Source: Piromyces finnis finn
Lineage: Eukaryota > Fungi > Neocallimastigomycota
NCBI GenBank assembly: GCA_002104945.1
Contig: MCFH01000068.1
Span: 186,001-250,000 of the forward strand
DNA length: 64,000 bases
Direction: 5' to 3'
The position numbers were made by a program, and so were the translations under genes. Position 1 is the stretch's first letter. Each line of letters begins with the position of its first letter. The notes beneath the pieces were generated by a model. That model did no database searches. It had not been told where the DNA came from and worked only from the letters and a program-made list of their open reading frames with translations. Below, piece by piece: positions 7,312 to 47,914 of the stretch.

Positions 7312-9923
7312 TAAAGTAAATAATAATGTTAATAATAATAGTAATAATAATGGTAATAATGTTAATTATAGTAAAAACTATAATAGTATGAATAATGGTG
7401 CTAGTACACAATATTCTAATATATCAAATCCTAATAATAATACAAGATCAACTACTAGCATTAATAATCAAAATGATGAAATGAATGATTTGATTAACGG
7501 AATGCAGAACTTATACATAAAGACCTATTATTTCTGCCATGAACCAGGTCATATTGCCAGATTTTGCCCACACATGAACTCTACATATTATACAAAAAAC
7601 TAGGTTATGGAAGAGGGCAAACTTCCGTTAATCAAACTGCCAACACTAATAATAACTATTACTATAATAATAATAATATAATGAATCCCGATGTTACAGC
7701 AACTACTTATTCACCTAATTATGAAGCTATTGTTGCTCCAGCTAAAAGACATCGAGATGAAAAATTAATAGCTAAAAATCCATATTCCAGAATTCCTAAT
7801 ACAGAAAGAGAAAAGAATAATTTTAAAAATATTAATACTAATATTAACACTAATAATAACATTAATAATATGAATAAAACTAATTTAAATAATAATATAA
7901 ATAATAACAATTTTAATAGTATGAATAGTAATACTACAAATGAAAATAATTTTAACAATAATATTAGTAATAATTTTGATGATATCAATAATAATAATTT
8001 TAATACATTATTACTAGAATAATACTAATAATTCTAGTAATAATTTTAACAATAATAATTTAAATAATAATGATAATAATAATATTAATGATAATTCAAT
8101 TGATAAGAATAATAAAACCAAGAAAGTAAATTTTAAATTAGAAAATGAAGATAAATCAAAGAAAAATAAGACTACCAGTTTAAATACCGATATAGATATG
8201 AAAGAAGCTAATAAGGTAAAGAAAACGTGTCTAAATGAAGAATCCACTTTGGAAAATATATTACCTAGTGATAATTCTAATAGTATAAAAACAAAAACTT
8301 CAATCCAAATGCTAAAAGATTCAGAGGAATATAATATATGTACCGATTTATTAAATACTCTAGCTAATATTACTTTTGGACAACTTTTAGGTGTTAGTAA
8401 AACGTCCAAAGCTGAATTAATTAAAGGATTAAAGAATTTAAAGTTGGATAATATTATTATTAGTACCACTGAAGTTGATGAAAATAATAATAATTTGTAT
8501 AAATTAAATAATAATTTCATTAATATCGATGGAAGAACTAAAGTAAATGATCATGATGTTGCAGTTGTTCATGGTACAATCAATTCCTATTCAGCAGCTA
8601 TATTTATTGATGCATGTAGTAATACAAATTTAATTACGCTCTCCTTTTAGATAATAAAATTAAAGATTTTGAAATTGTAGGACAAATTAGAGGAAGAATA
8701 AGACAAGCAATGGTTGATGATGTTGCTAGAGTATATGATCTAGTGAAACTTCATGTAAAAATAGGCAAAATTGAATTTGATTCTATATTCAGAATATCAG
8801 ATAAAAACGATTCATTTTATGATGCTATTATTGAATTTAAAACACAAAATGAAAATCGCATTATGATTGATACCGTTGATAAAACATTAGTTTTGAAATA
8901 TTCTGATAATAAATTTATTCCTATTGTTGATGTTGAAGATATTTCTATATTTCAATCCCAAGCTCTTTCTTGCTATTCCAATGATGTAGAAGATATTTAT
9001 TTTGATTACGAAGATATAACCGCTAGTACTATTTTAGCTGTAGTTGAAGAAAATAGACCTAACAAAATAGAAAATAATAATAATAATAAAATGGATATTA
9101 TGAATAATATAATTTCTAATATCAAAGTTGATAACGATGTTGATAAAAATTTATTTAGTTCTCTTCTTTCTCTTCTTAAAAATTTTAATGATGTTATTGC
9201 TGTATCTTCTGATGATTTGGAACCATCAAATTTGTTACCACACCACATTACTTTGGAGGATAATGTGCGCCCTATTAAACAAAAAGCTTATAATATTTCA
9301 CAAGTTCAATTATCAGGTTTAAAGAAGAATTAGAAAAACTAATTAATAAAGGTTTAATTGAACCGTCTCATTCTCCGTGGGCTTCTCCAGTGGTTATGGT
9401 TAAGAAGAAAAATGGAAAATGGCGCCTTTGCATTGATTTTAGAAAATTAAATAATGTAACTGTTAAAGATGCATACACCCTACCTAAAATCAAAGAAATT
9501 TTTGATTCACTTAAAGACTCAAAAATCTTTTCGACAATTGATTTATTTAGTGGATATCATCAAATTCCTATGTTCAAAGAAGATATGGATAAAACTTCTT
9601 TTACCACGAAATTTGGTAACTATTATTTTAAAGTTATGCCTTTTGGTTTAACTAATGCTCCTGCCACTTTTCAGCGCGAAATGAATCGTATCTTTTTCGA
9701 TTTAATTAATGAATGTGTTCAAATATATTCAGATGATATTATCATTTATTCTTCTAGTTTTGAAGATCATATTAATGATTTAAGAAAAGTTTTTACTATT
9801 TTACGTAATAACAAATTAAAGTTAAATATTGAGAAATGTTCTTTTTGTCAACTTGAAATAGAGGTTTTAGGTCATCGGGTTACTATTGATGGTTTACTTC
9901 CTTTGGAAAAAAAAGTCGCATCT

Positions 9924-10927
9924 TGTTAAGTTTTTGGATTTGGTTATGCGGCCAGGTCAGAATGTTATCAATTATATAGTAAATATGTTTTTTAAGAAAT
10001 TAAATTTAAATATAAAATAACCCTTTAAACTTCCAAATGAAAAATTAATATTTATTCTTTAGAATAACTTTTTTATAAAATTTTATTTATTTATTAATAA
10101 TAATATAAATGATAATATATTTAATAACTATATAATTAAGTTTATAACTATAATCTTTACAAAGAATTAAAATCAAATTCAATTCATTCTATTTTATATT
10201 CTTTGTTCAGATTATTAAATTGATAAAAATAAAGTATTACATGTAATATATTAATAATATAATTAGATAAATAATAAGATTGTTTGTTTGTTTGTTTGTT
10301 TTGTCATGACATAAAATAAAATAAACATATGATTAATCATTTAAACACTTGATCCATTAACCTATTTTATAATAATTAAAATTATTTAATTTATAAATGT
10401 TAACTGTTACACCTAAATGGTTTAGTTCTATTTTTAGTAACAGTCACTATCATTAATTAAATTAATATAATTAAAATTTCCATTGATATCTTTTTAATTT
10501 TCGTCAAGTCATAAGAAATGTCTATGATCCATACTTGATATCATATTAATTTTAATTTACTTATTAAAATCTTCAAATGATCATATCTTTCTTAAATGAC
10601 CAGTTAGAAGAACCGCGATTGTACCAAAATGTAGCCTTTTCCTTAAGCTTTCTAATAAACCTGGTTTCACAGCCGTATCACTTACAACCGTAGCGATCGT
10701 TTTTGGCGAGTTACGCCTTGTTTCGTGTTTGTTTATTTTTGGCTAAGGGTTATAGTGTATTGATATTAAAATTTTGAAATCATAACCCTTTCACTGAATC
10801 AGAATTTAAAAGGTGACTTTTAAAGGTGTTTTAAAATAATCATTGAAATTATTTAATTATAATTATTATGTTTAATTAATTATAGATATTATCTGAATTT
10901 GTTTTAAATCCAGTTAATATCTTCACA
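9924..10927 (+). mobile_element. Family-X ~1-kb solo-LTR-like element, TSD CATCT
   Basis: TGTTAA...TTCACA termini. CATCT at 9919-9923 and 10928-10932. Other copies at 38224-45586 (-) and 46861-47865 (+). Confidence 0.88.
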
Positions 10928-10968
10928 CATCTATTAAAGAAATGAACCCACCACGAGATATCTCTGAA

Positions 10969-13900
10969 TGTAAAATATTCTAAACTAAGTTCAGGTTTGT
11001 ATACACTCAATATTCTAAACTACACTTTAAATTATTTTTAATTTTTTATATTTTATTTATTAAACTATTTTAAAATAACTAAACTAAAACAACCGTTGAT
11101 TACTTTACCGTGAAGGATATTTTACCAGAGCCCTCACTAGGTAATCAATTTATATTTATTTAAAACTAAAATTATTAATCTAAACTATAAACTAATTATA
11201 AACTAATGTTAATTTATCTAAATAAAATTAACCTATACAATTTTCCAACTTATTAGAATAGAAAGTTCACCTTTGTATACGAATAGTAATAGAAAAAAAA
11301 ATTAATAATTAATTATAGTGAGAATTTAATAATAGAATTAAATTCGGGGATTATATAAAAAATATTAATATTAAAAAAAAAAAAAAAAAAAAAAAAGGAA
11401 AATTTTTTTTTTTTAGAAATTAATTTTAGTTAATTTCGGGGTATTTTAAAATTATTTGGTATAGAATAATTTGTTGTTAAAATAGTTTAATAGTTAATAA
11501 TTAATAAATAGTAATAATATAAAAATACTAGTTTAGTTAATAATATATAATACATTATTTGGTTTTAGTTATTAATAAGAAAGTTTAAAATAAGTATAGA
11601 AAATAAAGTTGAGTAAATTAAATAATTGGGATATTAAATATTGGTTGACTATTTGTTGTTTATTAAGTAGTAATATGAATACTAGATATAGAATGTTAGA
11701 CAACCGTGACGATGGAATAGCTGGAGTCATTGACGCAGGCTCTGAGGCGAGTTCCATGATGGATATTGAGGATGAGACTGGTAAAAGCGTTAACACCAGG
11801 GGAAAACTCATCCCAAAACCTCCAAGATTTTCGGAAAAAGAAGTGAACTTCTTTACTTCCTGGCAAGATTGGAGAAATACTTTAAATATAACTTGGAAGA
11901 AGATGCTACCGACGCCTACAAGCTGGATATCTTGGGATGCTACCTGGAAGGAACCGCCGCCGAATGGTTTGCCGACTTAGAAAGAGAAGAAAGCCCCCTG
12001 TTGAACTCTTACGAAGATTTTATTGAGGCAATGAAGGCTCGCTACAAGACTTGCAACAGCGCCGATGTAGCTAACAGTCGGTTGGTGAAGATAAAAGCAG
12101 GACAATTAAGGAACGTAATGGACTACTGTGAAGCTTTTGAGAAGATGGCCAGGGATTCGTCATTTAATGATGAAGCTAAGATCTACTTCTTTATGGAAGG
12201 ACTACCAACATCCGTCAAGGACAAAGCAAGGCTACTATATCCAAAAATTAGAAAACTTACCGAATTGATCAATGTGGTTGCCGCTAATGTCGAAGTTGAA
12301 TGGAAAACTTATGGAAAAGAAAGTTAGAAGATATAATAGACACTTAGGAACTAACAGATATGCTTCTTATGGAACCAAGTATAATAACTATGTGGATCAA
12401 GAAGACTACCAAAATTCGACCAAACCAAGAAAATGCTTTTTCTGCAAAAGAACAGGACACTTGAAGAAAGATTGTCCTCAACTTAAGGACAAAATAATAA
12501 ATCGACCAAAAGCATTTATGGCTACTACCGCTGGAAGAAGGATGTTGAATGTTTATGACATCGTGCTACAAGTCAATAATGGTGCTTATCTTAAGGCTCT
12601 TGTGGATTCTGGTTCGGACTTGGACTTTTTGGATTGGAAGGCCGTTGATAAGTACAAGATTCCATTCCAAAGAATGTTTAAGGATAAATATGTTGAAGGT
12701 ATAGGTGGTAATGGATTTTTGAAGTATGAAACAATTCCTTTGATAATGAATATCAAGAATCATAAGGAATCCATTCAATTCTACCTTACCGATCTTCCTT
12801 CTGGTATTTCTATTATTTTGGGCAAGAATTGGTTAAGAAAACATGATCCTACAATTAGCTTCAAGGATCAAACTCTAGAATTTAAGTCCAAATTCTGTTC
12901 TTTAAATTGCTGTGCTACTCCAGAAGAAATGGAAAAAAGAAGCAAAGAAGAAGAATTGTCCAAGGAAGAAGAAAGAAGAAAAGAGAAGGAACTAGTACAG
13001 GAAATACTCAATAATTATAAAAATAGTTTAAAAATTAGAGATAGTGAAATTAAGAACAAAGAAAATATAAAAATTATAGATAAAAATAAGAATTCATGTA
13101 TTAAAAAGAAATGTAGTAAAAACTTAAAATTAAATAAAAAGAATGTTCAAAAGTATATTGTATGTAGTGTTATTTCAAATGAAGAAAATAAAGGTGAAGA
13201 TGTTGAAGAAAGTGTTGTAGAAATTCCTGATGTATATAAGGAATTTGAAAATGTATTTGATGAAGTTGAGTGTAATGAACTACCTCCACATCGAATATAC
13301 GATTGTAAAATAAGATTGAAAGATAAAGATAACTTATTTTATGGTCCGTTATACCCTTTGACAGAAGAAGAAAGGAATACGTTAAAGGAGTATATTTCTG
13401 AAAATTTAGAAAAAGGATTTATTAGACCGTCTACTTCACCTGCTGGAGCACCTGTGTTGTTCGTTAGGAAAAAGGATGGGACTTTAAGATTGTGTGTTGA
13501 CTACCGAAGACTCAATGAAAACACAATTAGGGATTCATATCCACTACCTCTCATATCTGAATTATTCGATAGATTAAGAGAAGCCAAAGTTTTTACTAAA
13601 CTTGATCTCAAGTCTGCTTATAATCTAGTTCGAATAAATGAAGGTGATGAATATAAGACTGCATTTAGGACAAGATTTGGTCACTTTGAATATCTTGTCA
13701 TGCCGTTTGGATTAAAAAACGCTCCTGCAACTTTCCAACATTTTATCAATGATGTTCTCGGGGAATACTTGGATGAATTCGCCTTTTCTTATATTGATGA
13801 TATTCTTATCTATTCGAAAAACTTGGAAGAACACCGAAAGCATGTAAAGAAAGTTCTTCAAAGATTAAAAGAAAATGGTCTTTATGCGAAACTTAGCAAA

Positions 13901-16900
13901 TGTGAATTTGAAACTTCAGAAACTACTTTCTTAGGGCATGTTATCTCAGATAAGGGAATCTCTATGGATCCAAAGAAGGTTAAAGCTATTATGGAATGGC
14001 CTGTGCCAACATCTGTTAAAGAAGTTCAGTCGTTTATTGGATTATGTAATTATTATAGAAGATTTATTCCAAACTTTGCTAGTATTGCTAAACCGTTACA
14101 TAATCTAACTAAGAAAGATGTCAATTTTCATTGGCCAGAAGAATGTAATGAAGCTTTTTGTATATTAAAGAAATTCTTTACCGAAGAACCAATTTTAATT
14201 CATGCTGATCCTGAATTACCTTTTGTGGTTGAGACAGATGCAAGTAATTTCGCAATCGGTGCCGTATTATCTCAAAGATTACCGGATAATAACGAGCTTC
14301 ATCCAATTTGTTATTATTCAAGAGGATTGACTAAATCGGAAAAGAACTACCCAATTTATGATAAAGAACTTTTGGCTGTTATTGAAGCTTTGAAACAATG
14401 GAGACATTACTTAGAAGGAGCTAAGCATCAATTTATGATCTACACAGATCATAAAAATCTTACTTTTCCAAGGAAGCCCGAATTATTATCGCAAAGACAA
14501 ATTCGATGGAATTTGTTCTTAACACGTTATGACTTCAAAATACAATATAGACCGGGTAAAGAAGGTGGAAAACCTGATGCTTTCTCAAGACGCCCTGATT
14601 ATGAAAAGGAAAAAATTAATAAAGAAGATGAAGAAGCCTATTCTTGCTTGACAGTTAAAGAAATCGAAGATACTTTATGTCTTGTGTCTATTCAAGGGAA
14701 TCTCAAAGAAGATTTAATTAAAGAAATTAAAGAAGATGAAGAAATTAAGGAGTTAATAAATATTCTACAAGGAAAATCTACCGCAAGTAAGAAGTATAAG
14801 AAGTTAATGAAGAATTTTAAGTTAAGCGAAGAAGGAATTCTTTTGTATAAAAGTTTAATTTATGTACCAAAGAAAATGAGAGATATAATAATCTCAATGC
14901 ATCATGACAATCCAATTCATGGTCATTTTGGTATTATTAAAACAAAAGAATTAATTACAAGAAACTTTGTTTGGATAAACATGACTCAAGATATAGTTAA
15001 GTTTATTGCTTCTTGTAAAGTTTGTGGAGCTGCTAAGGTTGATCGTCATAGACCTTATGGACTTTTACAGCCGCTACCAACTCCGGAAAGACCGTGGTCT
15101 TCTGTTTCTATAGATTTTATAACTGATTTGCCAAAGTCAAAGGAAAAAACAGTTATAATGGTTGTTGTGGATAGATTAACGAAGATGGCTCATTTTATTC
15201 CGTTTAGAATGGTTCCGACTGCTCAAATCGCCGCTGATGTATTCTTTAGAGAAGTTTTTCGTTTACATGGTCTACCTGATGAAATAATATCGGATCGAGG
15301 AACCCAATTTACTTCTGAATTTTGGCAAAGATTATGCACTTTGTTGAACATTAAGCACAATATTTCGAGTGCTCACCATCCTCAAACAGACGGGCAGACT
15401 GAACGTGTAAATAGTATATTAGAACAATTTCTTAGATGTTACATTAACAAAAGAAAAGATAACTGGATGAATCTTCTGCCTTATGCCGAATTTGCGTATA
15501 ATAATACACTTCAGCAATCTATAAATCAAACTCCATTCTTTGCAAATTATGGGCAAAATCCAAGATTTAATACCGATATTCCTGCTGATAGTGACAACAG
15601 AAGAGCTAACAGGCACGCCTCTCAGATGCAAGATAATATTAAATTTTTAAAGAAGAACTTAGAAAAAGCCAAGGAAAGATATAAGAAGTATGCCGATTGT
15701 ATTAGACTTATTCGACCAAAGTTAAAGGTTGGTGACCTAGTTTGGTTAAAGCGTCCTGATTTACTTCCGAAAGGGCCTCCAAAACTAACAAATAAGAAAC
15801 TTGGACCATTTAAGATTATTGAAAAAACAGGACCCGTTTCTTATAAATTGGAACTACCAGAAAGTCTAAGATGTCATCCCGTTTTTCACATTTCGAACTT
15901 AGAACCTTTTGTTGAAAGAGAAGTTGAAGTGAATGAATCATCTTCTAGAATTCCAAACATTGCTACTGATTCTACTGAAGGAAGAATTCCATTGAAGATT
16001 GTTAGTGAAAAAGTTGTTAATGGAACTAAGTACTACTTTATGGTTTGGAAAAGTTTATTACCTTCAGAAAGTACATGGATTAGAGAAGATGAAATCGAAG
16101 ACCCTCAGTTGATCCAGGAATACCTTAAACATAAGTCGCTCAGGGGCTCGACTTAAGAAGAGGGGCATGTAAAATATTGTATTAATAGAATAATGTATTT
16201 AATACGTATTTAAAATAATGTATAATGTATTAAATTAATGTACCGTAAAATTTCATAAAATTTATATCACAATACATTAACATAAATTTATGTAAATTTT
16301 ATTTTTTAATTACAAAAATTTATATCACAATACATTAACATAAATTTATGTAAAATTTAATTTTATGATAAGATAAAGTTTTTGATGATAAAATAAAATT
16401 TTAAATTAAATAAATTTTAACCAATAAATATTTTAGATAAAAAAAAAATTTTTTATAAACTAAACCTCAAAATTAGAAATAAATAAATTGAATATATGTT
16501 TGAAATATAATCAACCATATAGTAAATAAATCAAAACTTTATTTTAAGCTTAGAAAATTCTTTAGTAAATAGATTGAATTTAAATAGTTTAATACAAATA
16601 ATTTCTTTTAATAAATGTATAAATGTAAACAATGTAAAATTATAATATTAAAATATATATATTAGAATTTATTCAATTTATTTAAAAAGTATAAATAAAG
16701 AAAATTTTTCAACTATTGAAACGATAGTTGGAAAATCGTATAGGTTAATTTTGTTTAGATAAATTAACATTAGTTTATAATTAGTTTAGTTGTTTTTTTT
16801 TTAATAATAAATATTGATTACCTAGTGAGGGCTCTGGTAAAATATCCTTCACGGTAAAGTAATCAACGGATGTTTTAGTTTAGTTATTTTAAAATAATTT

Positions 16901-16992
16901 AATAAATAAAATATAAAAAATTAAAATAATTTAAAGTGTAGTTTAGAATATTGAGTGTATACAAACCTGAACTTAGTTTAGAATATTTTACA
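10969..16992 (+). mobile_element. Element D: chromovirus with inverted termini (5' end is the reverse complement of R-U5; normal 3' LTR 16168-16992), TSD CTGAA
   Basis: 10969-11250 is the reverse complement of 16726-16992. CTGAA at 10964-10968 and 16993-16997. PPT AAGAAGAGGGG before 16168. Confidence 0.9.
11674..16156 (+). pseudogene. gag-pol: D gag-pol (gag, CCHC, PR, RT, RNase H, integrase, chromodomain-like), with two frameshifting deletions in gag
   Basis: Homologous to the single ORF of E. A 1-nt loss near 11833 and a deletion near 12320 break the frame. Motifs LVDSGS, YIDDIL, ETDAS, SDRG, GPF. Confidence 0.9.
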
Positions 16993-17001
16993 CTGAACTA
17001 C

Positions 17002-17406
17002 TGTAACGAATCATAGAAATTAGTAACCAGTCTTAGTGGTTAGTAACTAAGACCTTGGTTTGGATTACTCGAGTTCGAATCATCATTAATCCTTTTTTAT
17101 TAAATATTAAAATATTTTTACAACAAAATTTTATCAAAAAAGAAAATTTCTGATTGGACTAAAAAATTAAGTTGTAAAATTTTTGTAAATTTAATTTTAA
17201 AAATTTTTATATAAATACGAGTGAAATTTCCTTAAACATTTTTTAATTCGAGTTTTTATTAACAAAAATTTTTATAATAAAAATAAAATTATTAAACACT
17301 AACCTGTTATAATTTTGTTAAGTGTTCAATAATAAAAATTTTATTTATTTTTATTTTTTCCTTTTATATATTTGTGTTTTTATTTATTGAACATTAGTTC
17401 TTTACA
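17002..17406 (+). mobile_element. Family-B solo LTR, TSD ACTAC
   Basis: TGTAA...TTACA termini. ACTAC at 16997-17001 and 17407-17411. Confidence 0.92.
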
Positions 17407-19736
17407 ACTACGTTCATTTTTAGGTATGACTAGTTATTACAGAAATTTTATTGAAAATTATTCTGCTATTGCAGCTCCTCTTTGCAAATTATTAAAGAAG
17501 AAAATTAAATATGAATGGACAGAAATTCAAGAACAAAGTTTCAGAAATCTGATATATTGCCTAGTTAATGCACCAATTCTTTGTTTTCCTAAATTTGATG
17601 TTCCTTTTATAATTAGATCTGATGCTTGTGGATATGGAATTGGTGGTGTTTTACTACAGTTATATGATGACAATATTGAACACCCAGTTTATTTTGTTAA
17701 TAGAAGTATTAAGAAATCAGAAGAAAATTATACCACCAATGAATTAGAAGGTGCTGCTGCTTATTATTGTCTTTTACAATTTGAGTCATATATTCTAGGG
17801 AATCCATTTCAAACTATTCTTTATACTGACCATGAACCTTTAGATCCCATCATTAAGAAAGGAGAACCGAATACGAAAAAACATCAACGCTGGTGTGATA
17901 AATTTAGTCAATTAAAAGTTAATATTATTTATCAACCAGGAAAAACTAATAAAATTGCTGATGCTTTATCCAGAATAACTTTGAAAGAGAACTTAATTGT
18001 TAACACTACTATTTCTAATGGTAATGACAATAATAATAAAGATGAGAATAATAGTAGTATTAATAAGTTTAATGCTAATAATTTGGATAATTTGGAAATT
18101 AATAATAATAATAATGATAAAAACAATAATAATAATAATATCAACAATATCGATATTTCCAACAAAACCAATAGTTCCAATTTTACCGAGGAGGAGAACG
18201 AAAAATTTGTTTCCGATTTTATGAAAAAATTTTTAAATGATAAAATTGTCACTATTGACAATAAATTATATTTCAAAGATAATAATAATTTTAGGGAGAT
18301 TATTGATAACCCTTACACTAAAATTAAAATAATTGCAAAAGAGCATAGAATTGGACATGAAGGAGTACAGAAAACTTATGAAAGAATCAAAAACAAATTT
18401 TATTGAAAAAATTTAATCATTGATGTAAAAAAATATGTCTCCTTATGTAAAATATGTCAGTTAAATAAATCTGAGCCATTACCAAAGCCGACAGAAAAGT
18501 TTAGAACACCTGTAGAAGCACCCTTTGTTAGACTTGGTCTTGATATTATAGGTCCATTAAAATAAACCACACTTGGGAATAAATATATAATGGTATGTGT
18601 GGACTATTTTACTAAATGGGTGGAAGCAAAACCAGTTAGAACTACTAATTCTCAAGAAGTAACTAATTTCTTAGTTGAAGTATTTAGTAGGCATGGAACT
18701 CCACAATTAATAATAACAGATAATGGTGTACAATTTGTTTCAGAGTACACAAAAATATTTGTAGATCTTTATGATGTATACATTCATTTCATTAGTACAT
18801 ACTATCCAGTATCTAATGGACTGGTGGAAAACAGAAACAGAGAAATTGGTAAGCAATTAAAAAATTTCTTTGATAACAATGAAAACTGGGATTTATTGTT
18901 ACCAATTGCATTATGGGCTATTCGAACTTGTAAATCTGTTTCTACTGGTTATTCAAGTTTTGAACTCTTGTATGGAAGATCAGAAAATATTCCAATTGAT
19001 ATTAATATAAGAAATTCAATATTAAGTATAGAAGAAAGATCAATAGAAGAATTATTAATGGAAAGATTTATAGACCACGCCAAATGGGTAAAACAAGCTG
19101 CCAGTAAAATGCTAGGGACGATAAACTATTGGAAAAGTAGAAGATTAGCTCAACAAAGTATGAACAATAAAAATAATTATAAAATAGGGGATAAGGTAAA
19201 GATTAGGAACCAACAAAGAAACAAGTTAGAACCCTATTTTATCGGACCTTTTATTATTAGAGAAATATCTTGGAACACATCTAAATTACAAGATGAACTG
19301 ACGGGACAATATTTTGAAAGAAATGTCCATTTTAAAAATATATTACCATTCAGGGAGTAGAAATAAAATGAAATAAAATTATAAATGCATTGAAATATAT
19401 ATATATACTAACTATATAAGTATATAATTATAATAATAAGTAAGAAGAAAATTGATAACTTAGTAGATTAATAATTATATTAATTATTAATAATAATAGA
19501 AAGATATATACATATATATATAAAAAAAACAAAAAAAAATTTAAATATAAAAATTTTTATAAAAATTTTTAATTATTTTATATATAATTATAAAAATATT
19601 TCAATATAAATTTTATTAAATTATTTCGCATATATTTAATAAAATTTTATAATTAATTTTATTAAATATTAATTTATTATTTAATAATTAATAATTAATT
19701 ATTAAATAATCTAAAGATATATATTATATCTTTACA

Positions 19737-24256: not shown

Positions 24257-26405
24257 TTTATTCTTTTTGATATTAACATTTTGAATTACTATTATTTTAA
24301 AAGATAATTTAAAAAATGTACATTTATTAATTATTTTAGGATAATAAAGATATTCAAAATGACTTTTAAATTTTATTATTTAGGGTAAAATTTTTTTTTA
24401 TTCTTTTTTAAATTACTAAAAACCTAGTTATTTGGATAAAATACCATAATAATAAATGTTTTATGGATTATTTTCTTTCATTATTTCAATTAAAAAAGCT
24501 TTTTTTAATTTAAGTGAATTCTTTTTTTAAATTTAATTGTAAACTTTTTTAGAGGTTCTTTTGAAAAATAAAAAATCAAAATACCTAACCCTAATCAAAA
24601 CAATTTTAATTTTACTAGTTATGTTTTTTTTTTTAAAAAAAACATTAATAACAATTGTATTGCTGTTTAATAGTTTTGTTGTGTCATTACTTTTTTTTAT
24701 TATTAAATAATAATTACTCTTTTAAAGGAATACAAGTGTAAAAAATATTGCTACTATAATTATGATTTTTAATGCTTTTTTTATCATAAACTCAACTGTA
24801 AAATGTTTTACATATTCCTTTACTCTACATTATTAATACATATAATATATTATATATTTGTTTTGTTTATAATTATGTAAAGTGTTATTCTTTTCTACGT
24901 TAATCCTTTATTTAAATATTATAAAAGTATAATAATATTTAAAATGAATCAAAGCATAATAAAATTTATTAGTTTTAATAGCTTTTTCTAATTCGAGATA
25001 TCAGCAATAATTTATAAACTAACAAATAATTTGATAAATTACTGTTATACATGCCAGCTCTTTTTTTTTATAGTAATATTAAAAAATTACTTAAAGTTTC
25101 TAAACCTAATTGCAGCTGAATTATTTTATTATTACGCAAAATTTAAAATAAATTATTATTAAAAGTTTATGTACCACTTAATTACAATAGAAATAACACT
25201 ACTACAAGAATCTCCACCTTTAATTACTGCATATTTAATTTATAAACAAGAAAAAAGAAAAAGAGTTAAAGAATTTTTCATTCTTTTTTACTTTTGACAA
25301 TCCTAAAACAATAATATTATATTTTTATTTTGATAATTAAAAACTATAATTTTTATTGTTTTTTCAAACTTTAAAAATTTGTTTTGTATAAATTTCTTAA
25401 AAAAAAGTTAGTATTTAGTAAAATGTTATGTTTTATATTCATTAAGAATAAAATAAAGTGTATAAAATGATACTCGGAAAACAAAAAAGGTAAATTTAAA
25501 AATATTGATTATTGAAGATTTCAACTAATTTGATTTTATTATTAAAAATTGTGAATGTACAATTAATTTTCCAATATTAATTCATTCAAATAAAATAAAG
25601 CCCTAATTAGATTGTTGATTATTAATTTAAAAGCAGAAAAATAAATTTGTTTTAATGGTGTTAAAATAAATATTAAAGATTAATTTTAAATGGAATTGAA
25701 AATCTTTAGTAATGTATCAATCTTGAATGTTAATAATACGACTAATAAAATAATAAAATTATTCTTTAAAATTATTAAAAAAGTACTTTATACTAAGAAA
25801 AAAAAAACATTTTGAATATAATTTAACATGATTTAATTTAAGATTATTAAAATATTTTTTAATATTAACTGAAAAATAAATATACTTTTATTATGGATAA
25901 TATTAAATCTATATTATTTGTTTATATTTGTAAAATATTGTATTAGTTAAATGTATTAGTTAAATAATGTATTTAATACGTATGTAGATCAATGTATAAT
26001 GTATTGAATTAATGTACCGTAAATTTTACAAAAATTTACATCACAATACATTAACATAAATTTATGTAAATTTAATTTTATGATAAGATAAAGTTTTGAT
26101 GATAAAATAAAATTTTAAAATTAAATAATTTTTAACCAATAAATATTTGAGATAAGAAAAAATTTTTTTTATAAACTAAGCCTCAAAATTAGAAATAAAT
26201 AAATTAAATATATGTTTGAAATATAATCAACCATATAGTAAATAAATCAAAACTTTATTTTAAGCTTAGAAAATTCTTTAGTAAATAAATTGAATTTAAA
26301 TAGTTTAATACAAATAATTTCTTTTAATAAATGTATAAATGTAAACAATGTAAAATTATAATATTAAAACATGTATATTAGAATTTATTCAATTTATTTA
26401 AAAAG

Positions 26406-26452
26406 TATAAATAAAGAAAATTTCTCAACTATTGAAACGATAGTTGGAAAAT
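26406..26452 (+). promoter_or_regulatory. E LTR TATA box (26406) and predicted TSS / self-primer (26442-26452)
   Basis: TATAAATA lies 36 nt before AGTTGGAAAAT, which is complementary to the PBS at 26753-26763. Confidence 0.7.
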
Positions 26453-26944
26453 AGTAATTAATTACAATTGTATAATTAGTATTAATAATATTAGATTATT
26501 AATAAAGTTTATAATAAAACATTTTTTATTTAATTAAAAACTGATTACCTAGCGAAGGCTCTGGTTAAATAACCTTCGTGGTAAAGTAATCAGCAGTTGT
26601 CATAGTTTCGAAGATAAATTTATTATTTAAATAAATAAAAAAGTATTAAAAAATAAATTGGAATTTTTTTTGTTTTGTATTGTTGTTTTGTTAGCACAGA
26701 CCTAAATCCAATAATTTAATTTAAAGGTTAGATTTAAATTAAATATTTTACAATTTTCCAACTTTTTAGAATAGTGGATTTACCTTTGTGTGGGAAATAA
26801 AAAAAAAAAAAAAAAAAAAAAAAAATTTAAATAGTGAGAATTTAATATTAGAATTAAATTCGGGGATATATATATAGGAAAAAAAAAAAAAAAAAAAAAT
26901 TTGTGAATAATAGTAGAATAAATATAATAGATAGAATAGTATTA

Positions 26945-26982
<38 letters not shown>

Positions 26983-27089
26983 GATTTTAGAATAGAAAGG
27001 AATTTGTAGGATTTGGATAATCGAGGATTAAAATTTTGGAAATAAGGAATAGTTTAGATTGTATTGTTTGGTGGATAATATATTTTAGT

Positions 27090-30000
27090 ATGAACGGGGA
27101 ATATAGGTATATCGACAACTGTAATGGTAATGGAGTAGCTGGAATCAGTGACGACGATTCTGAGGCTAGCTCCATGGAAATAGAACATGAGGATGGCGAA
27201 ATCGTCAACGCCAGGGATAACCTCATACCAAGACCACCGAAGTTTTATGGAAAAAGGAATGAGTTAGCAAGTTTCTTTGCTAAACTCGAAAAATATTTCA
27301 AGTACAATCTAAGACAGAATGCTACCGAAGCTTACAAGATTGATGTACTTAGTTGCTATTTAGAAGGACCCGCCGCCGAATGGTATGCCGACTTGGAGAA
27401 AGAAGAAAGCCCTTTAATAAAATCTTATGAAGACCTTAAAGCCGCAATGCAAGCAAGGTACCGAACGTGCACGAGTTCTGATGTGGCTAATAGAAGATTA
27501 ACGAAGCTCAACTACAAGCAATTCAAAAGTGTGATGGATTACTGCGACTGTTTCGAAAAAACCTCTAGGGACTCGTCTTTTGACGATGAAGCCAAGATAC
27601 ATTTCTTTGTAGAAGGATTGCCGCCGTCTGTTCAGGAGAAGACAAAACTAGTATATCCTAAGATAAGAAAGCTGTATGATCTAATCAATACTGTAGCTGC
27701 TAATATTGAGGAAGACTGGAGAATCTACGGAAAGGACCCAATGAATATAGATGGAGAAAGAGGAAGAAGATATAACCGGAATCTAGGAAAGCGACTCTAC
27801 CAAGGGAATTATGGGATGAAATTCAACAACTACCGAGACTTTCATCACGAGGAAAAAGTACAAAAGACCAAGAAATGCTTCATTTGTAAATCAACAGGAC
27901 ATTTGAAGAAGGATTGCCCAATGCTCAAAGATAAATTGGCAAACCGCCCAAAAGCATTCATGATCAAGGAAAACAGAAAACAGCACTTGTTGAATGTTTT
28001 CGATGTTGTACTTCATGTCAATCGAGGAATCTCACTAAATGCGTTAGTTGACTCAGGATCCGACTTGGAATTCATGGATTGGAAAACGGTCAATAAATAT
28101 AGAATACCAATCCAAAGGATGATGAAAGACAAGTTTGTGGAAGGACTGGGAGGAAATGGATTACTGAAGTATGAAACGATCCCGTTGATCATGTCTATCG
28201 GCAATCACAAGGAGTCTATTCAATTTTATATTACGACTCTACCTTCAGACGTATCACTTATTTTAGGAAACAAATGGCTAAGAAAACATGATCCGATTAT
28301 AAGTTTTAAGAATCAAAAATTAGAGTTTAAGTCTGAATTTTGTAAGACGAATTGTTGCGCTACGGATGAAGAAATAAATGAAAGAATTGAACAAAATAAA
28401 TTAAAGGAAGAGGAAGATAAAAGAAAGAGATTAGAGTTAGCTGAAGAAATTATTAATAATTATAAGAATAGTTTAGTTATTAGAGATAGTAAACTTAAAA
28501 ATAAAGAAAATGTATTAGTAATAGAAAAGAAAAAGAAAAAGTCATGTATAAATAAAAAATGTAAAACATCAAAATTAAATAAAATTCTTCATCAAAAATA
28601 CTTAGTATGTTGTGCGATTACAAGTGATAATGATGGTACACCTGAAGTCCCAAATGAATACAAAGAATTTAAAAATGTATTTGATGAAATTGAGTGTAAT
28701 GAGTTACCTCCTCATCGAATATATGACTGTAAGATTAAATTAAAGGATGATAATGAATTATTTTATGGACCATTATATCCTCTAACCGAGGAAGAGAGGG
28801 AAACGTTAAAGGAATATTTAAAAGAAAATCTAGAAAAAGGATTCATAAGACCCTCAACTTCACCTGCTGGAGCACCTGTACTGTTCGTTAGGAAAAAGGA
28901 TGGAACTTTAAGATTGTGTGTTGACTACCGAAGACTCAATGAAAACACAATTAGGGATTCATATCCGTTACCTCTTATATCCGAATTATTCGATAGATTA
29001 AGAGAAGCCAAAGTTTTTACTAAACTTGATCTCAAGTCTGCTTATAATCTAGTTCGAATAAATGAAGACGATGAATATAAAACTGCATTTAGGACAAGAT
29101 TCGGTCACTTTGAATATCTTGTCATGCCGTTCGGATTAAAAAACGCTCCTGCAACCTTCCAACATTTTATCAATGATGTCCTCGGGGAATATTTGGATGA
29201 ATTCGCGTTTTCTTATATTGATGATATTCTTATCTATTCAAAAGACTTAAAAGAACACCGAACTCACGTAAAGAAAGTCCTTAAAAAATTACAAGAAAAT
29301 GGGTTATATGTAAAATTAAGCAAATGCGAATTTGAAACGAATAAAACGTCATTTTTAGGTCACATAATTTCGGACAAGGGCATCTCCATGGATCCAAAGA
29401 AGGTAGAAGCAATTATGAATTGGCCAATTCCAAAGACTGTAAAGGAAGTTCAATCATTTTTGGGTTTATGCAATTACTATAGAAGATTCATTCCGAACTT
29501 TGCAGAAATAGCGAAACCTTTGCACAATCTAACAAAGAAAAATGTAGTTTTTGACTGGACTATAATTTGTAATAATGCTTTTGAGAAGTTAAAGCAGTGC
29601 TTCACTGAAGAACCCATTTTAGTACATGCCGATCCAGAATTACCTTATATAGTGGAAACTGATGCTAGTGATTTTGCAATTGGTGCAGTATTATCTCAAA
29701 GATTAAACAATAAGGAACTACATCCAATTTGTTATTTTTCAAGAGGACTTACTAAGTCAGAAAAGAACTATCCGATCTACGATAAAGAATTATTAGCGGT
29801 TATATGTGCACTTAAAGAATGGAGACATTATTTGGAAGGAGCTAAGCATCAATTCACTGTGTTTACAGATCACAAGAATCTTACCTTTCCAAGAAAGCCT
29901 GAATTATTATCTCAAAGACAAATTCGATGGAATTTGTTCTTAACTCGTTACGACTTCAAACTCCAATACAGACCAGGAAAAGAGGGAGGAAAACCGGACT

Positions 30001-31574
30001 CATTTTCAAGAAGACCTGACTTTCAAAAAGAGGAAATTAAAGATGAAGAAACATTTTCTTGCTTAACTATAAAAGAAATTAAGGAAAACTTATGTTGTAT
30101 TGCAATCCAAGGAAATCTTAAAGAAGAATTAATCAAAGAAGTTAAAGAAGATACAGAAATACAAGAATTAACAAAAATTCTACAAGGGAATTCTATTGCA
30201 AGCAGAAAGTATAAAAAGCTTATGAAGAACTTTAAATTAAATGAAGAAGGTATTCTTTTGTATAAAGGATTAATTTTCGTACCAACTAAAATGAGAGAAA
30301 ACATAATTTCAATTCATCATGATAATCCAGTTCATGGCCATTTTGGTATTATCAAAACCAAAGAATTAATAACAAGAAATTTCATTTGGTTAAACATGAC
30401 TCAAGATATAGTAAAGTATATAGCTTCTTGCAAGACTTGTGGTGCAGCTAAAGACAATCGCCATAAACCTTATGGATTATTGCAACCTCTACCTACTCCT
30501 AGTAGACCTTGGTCCTCGGTATCGATGGATTTCATAACTGATTTACCAAGATCTCATCAGAAAACGGTTATAATGGTTGTGGTTGACAGACTAACAAAAA
30601 TGGCTCACTTTATTCCATTCAGAATGATTCCAACTGCTCAAATTGCAGCAGATGTCTTCTTTAGAGAAATTTTCCGATTACATGGATTGCCAGACGAAAT
30701 TATATCTGATAGAGGAACGCAATTCACTTCTGAATTTTGGCAACGTTTATGTTGCCTATTAAATATCAAACATAATGTTTCAAGTGCTCACCATCCACAA
30801 TCCGATGGTCAAACTGAACGAGTTAATAGCATTCTAGAACAATTCTTAAGATGTTATATCAATAAAAGAAAAGACAACTGGATGAATCTCTTACCTTATG
30901 CGGAATTTGCATACAATAATACACTACAACAATCGATTAACCAAACACCTTTCTTTGCTAACTATGGTCAAAATCCAAGATTTGATTTAGAAATTCCAGC
31001 TGATAGTGGTAATAGAAGTGCTAACCGTCACGCCTCTCAAATGCAAAACAACATTAAATTTTTAAAGAAAAATTTAGAAAAAGCTAAACAAAGATACAAG
31101 AAATATGCTGATTGTATAAGACTTATTGGTCCGAAATTGAGAATTGGTGATTTAGTTTGGTTAAAGCGTCCTGATTTACTTCCTAAAGGACCTCCTAAAT
31201 TAACTGATAAAAAACTTGGACCTTTTGAAATCATCGAAAAGACTGGACCAGTTTCTTATAAGTTAAGATTACCTGAGTCTTTTAGATGTCATCCTGTTTT
31301 CCATATCTCGAATTTAGAACCTTTTGTAGTGAGAGAAAATAGTGATAATTTGCAACATTCTATCAAGATACCTAATATCGCTACTGATTCATCTGTAGAA
31401 AGAATTCCATTGAAAATAGTTAGTGAAAAAATTGTCAATGGAATCAAGTATTATTTCATGGTTTGGAAAGATCATCTTCCTTCAGAAAGTTCTTGGCTTA
31501 GAGAAGATGAAATTGAGGACCCTCAAATGATTCAAGAATTTCTTAAACACAAGTCGCTCAGGGGCTCGACTTAA
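27090..31574 (+). CDS. gag-pol: E single-ORF gag-pol polyprotein (1494 aa from first ATG): gag, CCHC, PR, RT, RNase H, integrase, chromodomain-like
   Basis: Uninterrupted ORF with CFICKSTGHLKKDC, LVDSGS, YIDD, ETDAS, H...H/C..C, MDF/SDRG/E, GPF and a C-terminal YYFMVWK...SW. Confidence 0.95.
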   Translation: MNGEYRYIDNCNGNGVAGISDDDSEASSMEIEHEDGEIVNARDNLIPRPPKFYGKRNELASFFAKLEKYFKYNLRQNATEAYKIDVLSCYLEGPAAEWYADLEKEESPLIKSYEDLKAAMQARYRTCTSSDVANRRLTKLNYKQFKSVMDYCDCFEKTSRDSSFDDEAKIHFFVEGLPPSVQEKTKLVYPKIRKLYDLINTVAANIEEDWRIYGKDPMNIDGERGRRYNRNLGKRLYQGNYGMKFNNYRDFHHEEKVQKTKKCFICKSTGHLKKDCPMLKDKLANRPKAFMIKENRKQHLLNVFDVVLHVNRGISLNALVDSGSDLEFMDWKTVNKYRIPIQRMMKDKFVEGLGGNGLLKYETIPLIMSIGNHKESIQFYITTLPSDVSLILGNKWLRKHDPIISFKNQKLEFKSEFCKTNCCATDEEINERIEQNKLKEEEDKRKRLELAEEIINNYKNSLVIRDSKLKNKENVLVIEKKKKKSCINKKCKTSKLNKILHQKYLVCCAITSDNDGTPEVPNEYKEFKNVFDEIECNELPPHRIYDCKIKLKDDNELFYGPLYPLTEEERETLKEYLKENLEKGFIRPSTSPAGAPVLFVRKKDGTLRLCVDYRRLNENTIRDSYPLPLISELFDRLREAKVFTKLDLKSAYNLVRINEDDEYKTAFRTRFGHFEYLVMPFGLKNAPATFQHFINDVLGEYLDEFAFSYIDDILIYSKDLKEHRTHVKKVLKKLQENGLYVKLSKCEFETNKTSFLGHIISDKGISMDPKKVEAIMNWPIPKTVKEVQSFLGLCNYYRRFIPNFAEIAKPLHNLTKKNVVFDWTIICNNAFEKLKQCFTEEPILVHADPELPYIVETDASDFAIGAVLSQRLNNKELHPICYFSRGLTKSEKNYPIYDKELLAVICALKEWRHYLEGAKHQFTVFTDHKNLTFPRKPELLSQRQIRWNLFLTRYDFKLQYRPGKEGGKPDSFSRRPDFQKEEIKDEETFSCLTIKEIKENLCCIAIQGNLKEELIKEVKEDTEIQELTKILQGNSIASRKYKKLMKNFKLNEEGILLYKGLIFVPTKMRENIISIHHDNPVHGHFGIIKTKELITRNFIWLNMTQDIVKYIASCKTCGAAKDNRHKPYGLLQPLPTPSRPWSSVSMDFITDLPRSHQKTVIMVVVDRLTKMAHFIPFRMIPTAQIAADVFFREIFRLHGLPDEIISDRGTQFTSEFWQRLCCLLNIKHNVSSAHHPQSDGQTERVNSILEQFLRCYINKRKDNWMNLLPYAEFAYNNTLQQSINQTPFFANYGQNPRFDLEIPADSGNRSANRHASQMQNNIKFLKKNLEKAKQRYKKYADCIRLIGPKLRIGDLVWLKRPDLLPKGPPKLTDKKLGPFEIIEKTGPVSYKLRLPESFRCHPVFHISNLEPFVVRENSDNLQHSIKIPNIATDSSVERIPLKIVSEKIVNGIKYYFMVWKDHLPSESSWLREDEIEDPQMIQEFLKHKSLRGST

Positions 31575-32445
31575 GAAGAGGGGAATGTAAAATATTGTAT
31601 TAGTTAAATGTATTAGTTAAATAATGTATTTAATACGTATGTAGATCAATGTATAATGTATTGAATTAATGTACCGTAAATTTTACAAAAATTTACATCA
31701 CAATACATTAACATAAATTTATGTAAATTTAATTTTATGATAAGATAAAGTTTTGATGATAAAATAAAATTTTAAAATTAAATAATTTTTAACCAATAAA
31801 TATTTGAGATAAGAAAAAAAAAAAAAAAAAAAATTTTTTTTATAAACTAAGCCTCAAAATTAGAAATAAATAAATTAAATATATGTTTGAAATATAATCA
31901 ACCATATAGTAAATAAATCAAAACTTTATTTTAAGCTTAGAAAATTCTTTAGTAAATAAATTGAATTTAAATAGTTTAATACAAATAATTTCTTTTAATA
32001 AATGTATAAATGTAAACAATGTAAAATTATAATATTAAAACATGTATATTAGAATTTATTCAATTTATTTAAAAAGTATAAATAAAGAAAATTTCTCAAC
32101 TATTGAAACGATAGTTGGAAAATAGTAATTAATTACAATTGTATAATTAGTATTAATAATATTAGATTATTAATAAAGTTTATAATAAAACATTTTTTAT
32201 TTAATTAAAAACTGATTACCTAGCGAAGGCTCTGGTTAAATAACCTTCGTGGTAAAGTAATCAGCAGTTGTCATAGTTTCGAAGATAAATTTATTATTTA
32301 AATAAATAAAAAAGTATTAAAAAATAAATTGGAATTTTTTTTGTTTTGTATTGTTGTTTTGTTAGCACAGACCTAAATCCAATAATTTAATTTAAAGGTT
32401 AGATTTAAATTAAATATTTTACAATATTAGGATACATTTTTCCTT

Positions 32446-46860: not shown

Positions 46861-47865
46861 TGTTAAGTTTTTGGATTTGGTTATGCGGCCAGGTCAGAAT
46901 GTTATCAATTATATAGTAAATATGTTTTTTAAGAAAATAAATTTAAATATAAAATAACACTTTAAACTTCCAAATGAAAAATTAATATTTATTTTTTAGA
47001 ATAACCTTTTATAAAATTTTATTTATTTAGTAATAATAATATAAATGATAATATATTTAATAACTATATAATTAAGATTATAACTAAAATCTTTACAAAG
47101 AATTAAAATCGAATTCAATTCCTTCTATTTTATATTCTTTGTTCAGATTATTAAATTGATAAAAAATAAAGTATTACATGTAATATGTTAATAATATAAT
47201 TAGATAAGTAATATGATTGTTTGTTTGTTTGTTTGTTTTGTCATGACATAAAAATAAAATAAACATATGATTAATCATTTAAACACTTGATCCATTAACC
47301 TATTTTATAATAATTAGAATTATTTAATTTATAAATGTTAACTGTTACACCTAAATGGTTTAGTTCTATTTTTAGTAACAGTCACTATCATTAATTAAAT
47401 TAATATAATTAAAATTTCTATTGATATCTTTTTAATTTTCGTCAAGTCATAAGAAATGTCTATGATCCATACTTGATATCATATTGATTTTAATTTACTT
47501 ATTAAAATCTTCAAATGACCATATCTTTCTTAAATGACCAGTTAGAAGGACCGCGATTGTACCAAAATATAGCTTTTTCCTTAAGCTTTCTAATAAACTT
47601 GGTTTCACAGCCGTATCACTTACAACCGTAGCGATCGTTTTTGGCGAGTTACGCCTTGTTTCGTGTTTGTTTATTTTTGGCTAAGGGTTATAGTGTATTG
47701 ATATTAAATTTTTGAAATCATAACCCTTTCACTGAATCAAAATTTAAAAGGTGACTTTTAAAGGTGTTTTAAAATAATTATTGGGATCATTTAATTCTAA
47801 TTATTATGTTTAATTAATTATAGATATTATCTGAATTTGTTTTAAGTCCAATTAATATCTTCACA
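46861..47865 (+). mobile_element. Third family-X copy with non-matching flanks
   Basis: Near-identical to 9924-10927. Flanks are ATATA and AGTAT. Confidence 0.88.
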
Positions 47866-47878
47866 AGTATTCGTGACA

Positions 47879-47914
47879 TATTAATACATTATTCTATTAA
47901 TACAATATTTTACA
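47879..47914 (-). mobile_element. 36-bp U3-end remnant of a D-family LTR
   Basis: Reverse complement TGTAAAATATTGTATTAATAGAATAATGTATT equals the start of the D LTR. Confidence 0.75.

Follow-up and report, generated by a model that had tools for sequence, protein, structure and literature searches.

An integrase-type Ty3/Gypsy element of Piromyces finnis with an inverted R-U5 segment in place of its 5' long terminal repeat

Tf1 and Tf2 of Schizosaccharomyces pombe, together with other self-priming chromoviral Ty3/Gypsy elements, are the closest described relatives of the retroelement reported here, which we call D and which occupies positions 10969-16992 of a 64,000-nt stretch of the fungus Piromyces finnis (assembly GCA_002104945.1, contig MCFH01000068.1, forward-strand positions 186,001 to 250,000; hereafter the window). 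The likeness to Tf1 and Tf2 covers the order of protease, reverse transcriptase (RT), RNase H and integrase, the Tf2-type SH3 domain, the C-terminal chromodomain, the 5-bp target-site duplication (TSD), a primer-binding site (PBS) that lies directly beside U5 and whose complement makes up the first 11 nt of R, and, in a sibling element C, the single gag-pol open reading frame (ORF). The difference is that D carries an inverted R-U5 segment where the 5' long terminal repeat (LTR) belongs. Inverted terminal repeats are the only feature that D shares with DIRS-1 and the tyrosine-recombinase retroelements, from which it differs in having a DDE integrase, a TSD, no internal complementary region and siblings with direct LTRs. 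D is probably a single dead-end integration of an aberrant complementary DNA (cDNA) that bore a U5 terminus at both ends.

The window is AT-rich, with roughly 13-33% G+C per 2 kb, and all searches of the organism's own genome covered the 56,455,805 bases of its 232-contig assembly, which was built with PacBio reads and Falcon (56.46 Mb; PMC5622200).

Anatomy of the element and its family

D has no 5' LTR, and no U3 sequence is present at its left end. Its one complete LTR is the 3' LTR on the plus strand (16168-16992, 825 bp), immediately preceded by the polypurine tract (PPT) AAGAAGAGGGGCA at 16155-16167, a motif that also stands before the 3' LTR of C. This LTR comprises U3 (16168-16725, with the TATA box TATAAATA at 16690), the R start AGTTGGAAAAT (16726-16736) and an R-U5 part that spans 16726-16992. 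As the sequence-only reading of this locus had described, the left 282 bp of D (10969-11250) are the reverse complement of that 267-bp R-U5 part, and re-alignment of the two arms gave 91.5% identity, indels included. The inverted arm proper (10969-11239, minus strand) holds U5 and R from R nt 12 onward, its outer end TGTAAAATATT being the U5 terminus. It joins the internal region at the 11-mer ATTTTCCAACT (11240-11250, plus strand), the junction homology, which equals R nt 1-11 when reverse-complemented and is at the same time the PBS. This double identity, also proposed earlier, agrees with the occurrence count across the window: the 11-mer is found on the plus strand at two sites only, 11240 and the PBS of C (26753), and its complement only at the R starts of four LTRs (2868, 16726, 26442 and 32113), where 0.04 occurrences per strand would be expected. 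The two ends of the LTR, TGTAAAATATT...AATATTTTACA, are inverted repeats of each other over 11 bp.

The unit as a whole, with its inverted arm, is flanked by CTGAA at 10964-10968 and 16993-16997, a match with a chance probability of about 0.003. When the flanks are joined with a single CTGAA, the resulting sequence, GAAATGAACCCACCACGAGATATCTCTGAACTAC, is contiguous at 11 other loci of the genome (2 exact, 9 with one mismatch), and its reversed-pattern control had no genome matches. The intact target at these 11 loci, taken with the matching flanks, indicates that D with its inverted arm is one clean insertion into one staggered cut of the size usual for the family, in line with the earlier proposal that it was integrated in this form.

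Downstream of the junction, all on the plus strand, lie a leader (11251-11868) with long A/T homopolymer tracts, whose closest relatives are not those of the left arm, a gag region (11609-12327) with Retrotrans_gag / Ty3_capsid similarity in different reading frames, and an open 1294-aa pol (12272-16156) with zinc knuckle, protease, RT, RNase H, integrase (H2C2, rve, SH3_Tf2-1) and chromodomain. The gag of D is spread over three reading frames while its pol is open, and the gag-pol of C (27036-31574) is one uninterrupted ORF of 1512 aa; the frame breaks could be real decay or long-read indel errors. Lacking the promoter of a left U3, D cannot yield normal genomic RNA, and since its gag is also split over three frames, no descendants are to be expected. 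Just 3' of the PBS, the leaders of both D (11366-11415) and C (26800-26980) contain long homopolymers of A and of T that reach about 30 nt.

The domain content of the predicted proteins agrees with the earlier assignment of D to the integrase-type Gypsy elements. In Pfam, the pol product matches RVT_1 (3.8e-37), RT_RNaseH (1.1e-37), Integrase_H2C2 (2.9e-17) and rve (2.4e-10), with a weak match to RVP_2, in the order protease, RT, RNase H and integrase with a DDE (rve) core. The C-terminus of the integrase matches SH3_Tf2-1 (9.1e-19) and Chromo (1.6e-07, aa 1242-1287), and the ORF upstream of pol is a Ty3-type gag. No tyrosine recombinase family appears among the Pfam matches of the D proteins. 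By these predicted domains D is a chromoviral Ty3/Gypsy element of the integrase type and not a DIRS element.

The sibling C (25929-32423) has direct LTRs and a 5-bp TSD, ATATT, on both sides, so that the 5-bp duplication is common to C and D, while the two direct LTRs of C are replaced in D by one LTR and the inverted R-U5. In 32 siblings (C and 31 other genomic copies) the U5 end TATTTTACA directly abuts the PBS ATTTTCCAACT, and the PBS complement AGTTGGAAAAT is situated in the LTR 36 bp downstream of the TATA box TATAAATA. When the 5' end of the C RNA was folded, nt 1-10 were paired with the PBS (z -3.05). Judged from its sequence, the D family has the Tf1-type self-priming layout, without a tRNA primer, and D is an aberrant copy of a family with direct LTRs. 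In DIRS elements inverted ends are the family norm and TSDs are missing; here 32 of 33 family copies show the normal U5|PBS border and D itself has a TSD. Inverted ends are not the design of this family but the accident of a single copy.

Origin of the two arms and rarity of the junction

The two arms of D have different relatives. For the left arm these are the R-U5 sequences of the LTRs at L002 and L003 (C187:108048 and C135:134779; 98.9% identity), two independent loci whose sequence in common is the LTR only. For the right arm the 98.9% match is L016, one of a separate group of copies (C152:575009 and others). Once the arms were aligned with 29 distinct R-U5 sequences, 30 columns told them apart; both states of 26 of these columns are found in other copies, and the remaining four states are private, two in each arm. 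This comparison indicates that the arms did not diverge in place and that they derived from two existing variants, and it points to a second, co-packaged RNA of a different subfamily as the source of the left arm. The sequence-only reading had allowed that the arms either had aged or had come from different co-packaged RNAs; the latter is favoured and the former is not, because 26 of the 30 differing columns are family variants.

Variants of U3, R-U5 and leader reassort among the copies generally, which is the pattern expected of frequent co-packaging and template switching, and to which DNA recombination could also contribute. One copy, L032, combines a D-like U3 (97.9%) and leader (95%) with a third R-U5 type. 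The copy at L002 (C187:106548-109829), apparently ordinary, resembles the left arm in its 5' R-U5 (99%), and an R-U5 of another type (88%) is located 5.67 kb downstream (C187:113719-113997).

A single base at the junction refines the position of the join. From each of the 29 other distinct R-U5 sequences a G would be predicted at position 11239, as the complement of R nt 12, but D has an A. This A is private to the left arm, and it is the base found before the PBS wherever the U5|PBS border is normal. The tract common to both sides is TAC(A/G)ATTTTCCAACT; the crossover is placed in its TAC, on the left side of the mismatch and 1-4 nt from the left edge of the 11-mer. The strand that donated the PBS thus also donated at least one base of U5, and the arm does not stop exactly at the 11-mer, as had first been stated, the offset being at least 1 nt into U5. 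The scar fits a D minus strand whose synthesis had entered U5 by 1 nt or more and whose extension then began at a T:G mismatch.

A junction-centred DNA search of the genome for other inverted loci gave no further contiguous match, and a genome search for patterns of inverted U5 followed by PBS and leader (gaps 237-297) returned D only. In addition, a junction census of two self-priming families listed each PBS-leader together with the preceding 16 nt, both with no mismatch and with as many as 2 allowed. The D family has 33 such junctions, 32 normal and one inverted, that of D. The second family is that of Y, a solo LTR next to D; its PBS ATAAAAACTC follows TTCTTTACA (282-272, minus strand) and is complementary to GAGTTTTTAT in its LTR, and its 39 genomic junctions are all identical and normal. 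Inverted junctions therefore amount to 1 of 72 PBS-bearing copies. The sequence-only reading had raised the possibility of a replication mode and had held that a sole locus would mean a one-off accident; by that measure D, alone among the 72, is an accident, and it is most likely a one-off dead-end product.

The target site and its nested insertions

The sequence into which D inserted belongs to an older Gypsy element, E. The RT part of the E pol lies at 9318-9923 and the pol continues at 17412-19282 (..LRSFLGMTSYYRNF, RNase H, integrase), both on the plus strand. Between the RT fragment and the fragment with RNase H and integrase, which starts from about 17412, sits the target of D, a 36-bp plus-strand island of E pol (10933-10968, ..IKEMNPPRDISE) that aligns with AIMEWPVPTSVKE of D's own pol. 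D had earlier been placed in the middle of a host ORF. An ORF is indeed interrupted, but it is not cellular, being a 15-codon piece of the pol of E. Across the joined flanks of D no ORF reaches 50 aa. The idea of a cellular host gene at this site was accordingly rejected, the ORF being a retroelement pol fragment.

Two further insertions adjoin D in the pol of E. On its left is a solo LTR of a third family, Z (9924-10927, plus strand, TGTTAAG...TTCACA), with the TSD CATCT, and on its right is Y (17002-17406, plus strand), a solo LTR of the other self-priming (fourth) family, with the TSD ACTAC, which overlaps the TSD of D by one base (16997). Z, D and Y are thus three insertions of three families within 45 bp of E pol (9919-17411 in the window). 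The cluster looks like a very local integration hot spot, or like nested targeting of existing elements by chromodomain integrases. Targeting to a tRNA as the cause of the repeated insertions was considered and rejected for want of tRNA or Rfam support: ARAGORN called no tRNA in the window and one only across 44 family loci, and Rfam gave no match in 10500-17600 at E<=1. The Y-family LTR starts with a tRNA-like segment (TAGTGGTTAGTA ... GAGTTCGAATC), seen at 17002-17090 and, on the minus strand, at 688-600, which was called by neither ARAGORN nor Rfam. Elsewhere in the window, 49 bp at 47866-47914 are the reverse complement of the start of a D-family LTR and adjoin the end of another Z-family LTR (46861-47865); this fragment is the truncated remnant of another nested insertion.

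Proposed mechanism, alternatives and comparison with known systems

We infer that D arose through an error at the second strand transfer of reverse transcription, followed by insertion by integrase. The transcript would begin, like that of Tf1, with 11 nt (R1-11) complementary to the PBS. The 3' end of a minus-sense DNA copied to the first base of R would then be ATTTTCCAACT, which is also how the plus-strand strong-stop DNA ends, and at the second strand transfer minus-sense R-U5 DNA could take the latter's place. As its source, the most economical assumption would be a full-length minus strong-stop DNA made on a co-packaged RNA of a different subfamily, with its 5' end not cleaved off as primer. 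The 11-mer at its 3' end would anneal to the PBS complement at the 3' end of the completed minus strand of D, and both 3' ends would be extended on the opposite strand until the product was fully double-stranded. The duplex so formed would read rc(U5)-rc(R)-PBS-gag-pol-PPT-U3-R-U5, where rc denotes the reverse complement, and integrase would insert it with the usual 5-bp duplication. Given the 11-bp terminal inverted repeat, a U5 end in the place of U3 would offer integrase nearly the same terminal bases. According to the summary in PMC11042837, about half of Tf1 cDNAs have a 3' end that retains a single-stranded PBS copy, so that a U5 end with an attached PBS would be a normal integrase substrate. 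The sequence-only reading had already proposed that the 3' end of the minus strand annealed to the primer complement in R. That pairing gives exactly the structure seen, although the mechanism built on it keeps the standing of a proposal; the source of the template and the route to a double-stranded product are our conditional additions to it.

Several considerations weigh against this account. The structure of D is known from assembled sequence alone, and one locus lends no support to the reproducibility of the route. Sequence cannot separate a join made at the cDNA level from a microhomology join made at the DNA level, because the 11-mer and the 11-bp LTR termini are common to both, and a DNA-level join would leave the identical scar at 11239. 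The three insertions within 45 bp make two insertions at one site less implausible than they would otherwise be. The canonical minus strong-stop DNA of Tf1-type elements lacks R1-11, which is cleaved off as the primer, so that the model requires one of three things: priming in trans, a 5' end that escaped cleavage, or a pause of the minus strand right after the first transfer. No published precedent for an integrated element with two U5 ends was found in a search that left older subscription-journal retrovirology mostly out of reach, and no report of an inverted R-U5 copy in Tf1-like elements was found in the literature searched.

A rearrangement of DNA after ordinary integration could produce the same outcome, and we consider it rather unlikely. 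It might have happened in two ways. An L002-type element or solo LTR may have inserted at CTGAA in the opposite orientation, D following into the duplicated CTGAA, after which the unstable head-to-head pair would have been resolved by deletion between direct ATTTTCCAACT repeats, one in the inverted R of the first element and one in the PBS of D. Alternatively, one normal insertion may have been inverted between its own R1-11 / PBS repeat and then lost sequence between its 11-bp LTR termini. The local hot spot, with three families in 45 bp and the TSDs of D and Y sharing one base, lends such schemes some weight, as do the mosaic nature of the family, in which LTRs of unlike type can sit about 5.7 kb apart and copies evidently recombine, and the fact that all junctions fall in 11-15 nt of shared homology, as microhomology-mediated repair would give. 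Nevertheless, the schemes require two or three rare steps, and no intermediate form is present among the 33 family junctions. The two-insertion version calls for two events on the same 5 bp plus a deletion of roughly 7 kb with both ends in the 11-mers and no remnant, and the inversion version predicts arms that were identical at insertion, so that with 26 of the 30 differences pre-existing it requires additional gene conversion. Quite improbable, in turn, is an assembly artefact, in which a misjoin or a chimeric long read placed an inverted LTR piece on the left of a copy that was normal or truncated at its 5' end. In its favour, the region is full of nested repeats, the broken gag frames would suit long-read indel errors, and in four sequencing runs (one sample and study, probably the source sample) only 0.29-0.48 of sampled words were found as in the contigs. 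A misjoin, however, would not give a perfect 5-bp TSD, a target seen at 11 loci and a breakpoint at the PBS; the arm is not copied from adjacent sequence, unlike the palindromes left by missed adapters; and the assembly was made with PacBio and Falcon from reads commonly longer than 6 kb (PMC5622200).

Two further routes would also start from cDNA. The simplest form of the earlier mechanism has the D minus strand folding back onto its own inverted R1-11 and copying its own R-U5, the arms diverging later. Complementarity within one molecule favours it, but identical arms would be expected at integration, whereas the 26 differing columns common to other copies exclude a simple fold-back of one minus strand, leaving only the four private states to later change. 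Each arm also has its 98.9% match elsewhere in the genome, and the fold-back gives a hairpin-ended molecule and not a free second end. This version is already largely refuted and we hold it to be very improbable. Scarcely credible is insertion by integrase-independent single-strand annealing at PBS homology, as for integrase-less Tf1, in which the single-stranded PBS at cDNA ends guides Rad52-dependent insertion at PBS homology, often beside resident elements (PMC11042837). The marks of that pathway (PBS or PPT homology at the target, no TSD, frequent truncation and tandem arrays; PMC11042837) are missing from D, whose termini are intact, whose 5-bp TSD is clean and whose target (..GATATCTCTGAACTAC..) is devoid of PBS or PPT homology; moreover, the pathway yields tandem or truncated elements and not an inverted R-U5. 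The anatomy of D is taken as real, and its origin by an aberrant strand transfer as plausible, on the basis of one locus known from assembled sequence.

If the cDNA origin is true, D records events usually seen only in engineered systems: integrase would have accepted in vivo a molecule with two U5 ends, RNAs of two subfamilies would have shared one particle, and the identity that enables self-priming would also open an error path at the second strand transfer. A broader proposition, which we regard as distinctly unlikely, is that self-priming LTR elements have a built-in failure mode, with minus strong-stop DNA posing as plus strong-stop DNA and the resulting two-U5 cDNAs being integrated in vivo. 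Were this true, it would provide natural evidence of heterologous RNA co-packaging and U5/U5 integration and a conceivable evolutionary step towards inverted-terminal-repeat retroelements; and if it recurred in the Tf1-like elements of fungi, plants and vertebrates, it would add a new class to the known defective retroelements. Tf1 offers a system in which the idea can be tested directly. For the genome the effect is small, namely one promoter-less dead-end copy within an already broken element.

Integrated products of aberrant strand transfer are also known from the retrovirus HIV-1, in which defective proviruses arise from misplaced first or second strand transfers guided by short PBS homology (PMC12657518). 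D resembles them in kind, but they carry deletions or tRNA read-through inserts, as opposed to the inverted R-U5 of D. An inverted R-U5 with two U5 ends needs the complementarity between PBS and R1-11 that is absent in tRNA-primed elements. A second parallel is found in the minus strong-stop DNA of HIV-1, which self-primes via the TAR hairpin and is an intramolecular dead end in vitro. There, as proposed for D, the 3' end of a minus-strand DNA anneals to minus-sense DNA and is extended; in D, by contrast, the template would have come from another genome and the product was integrated. Neither of the two HIV-1 processes, which are the closest described parallels, gives an integrated element with two U5 ends, the arrangement that D displays.

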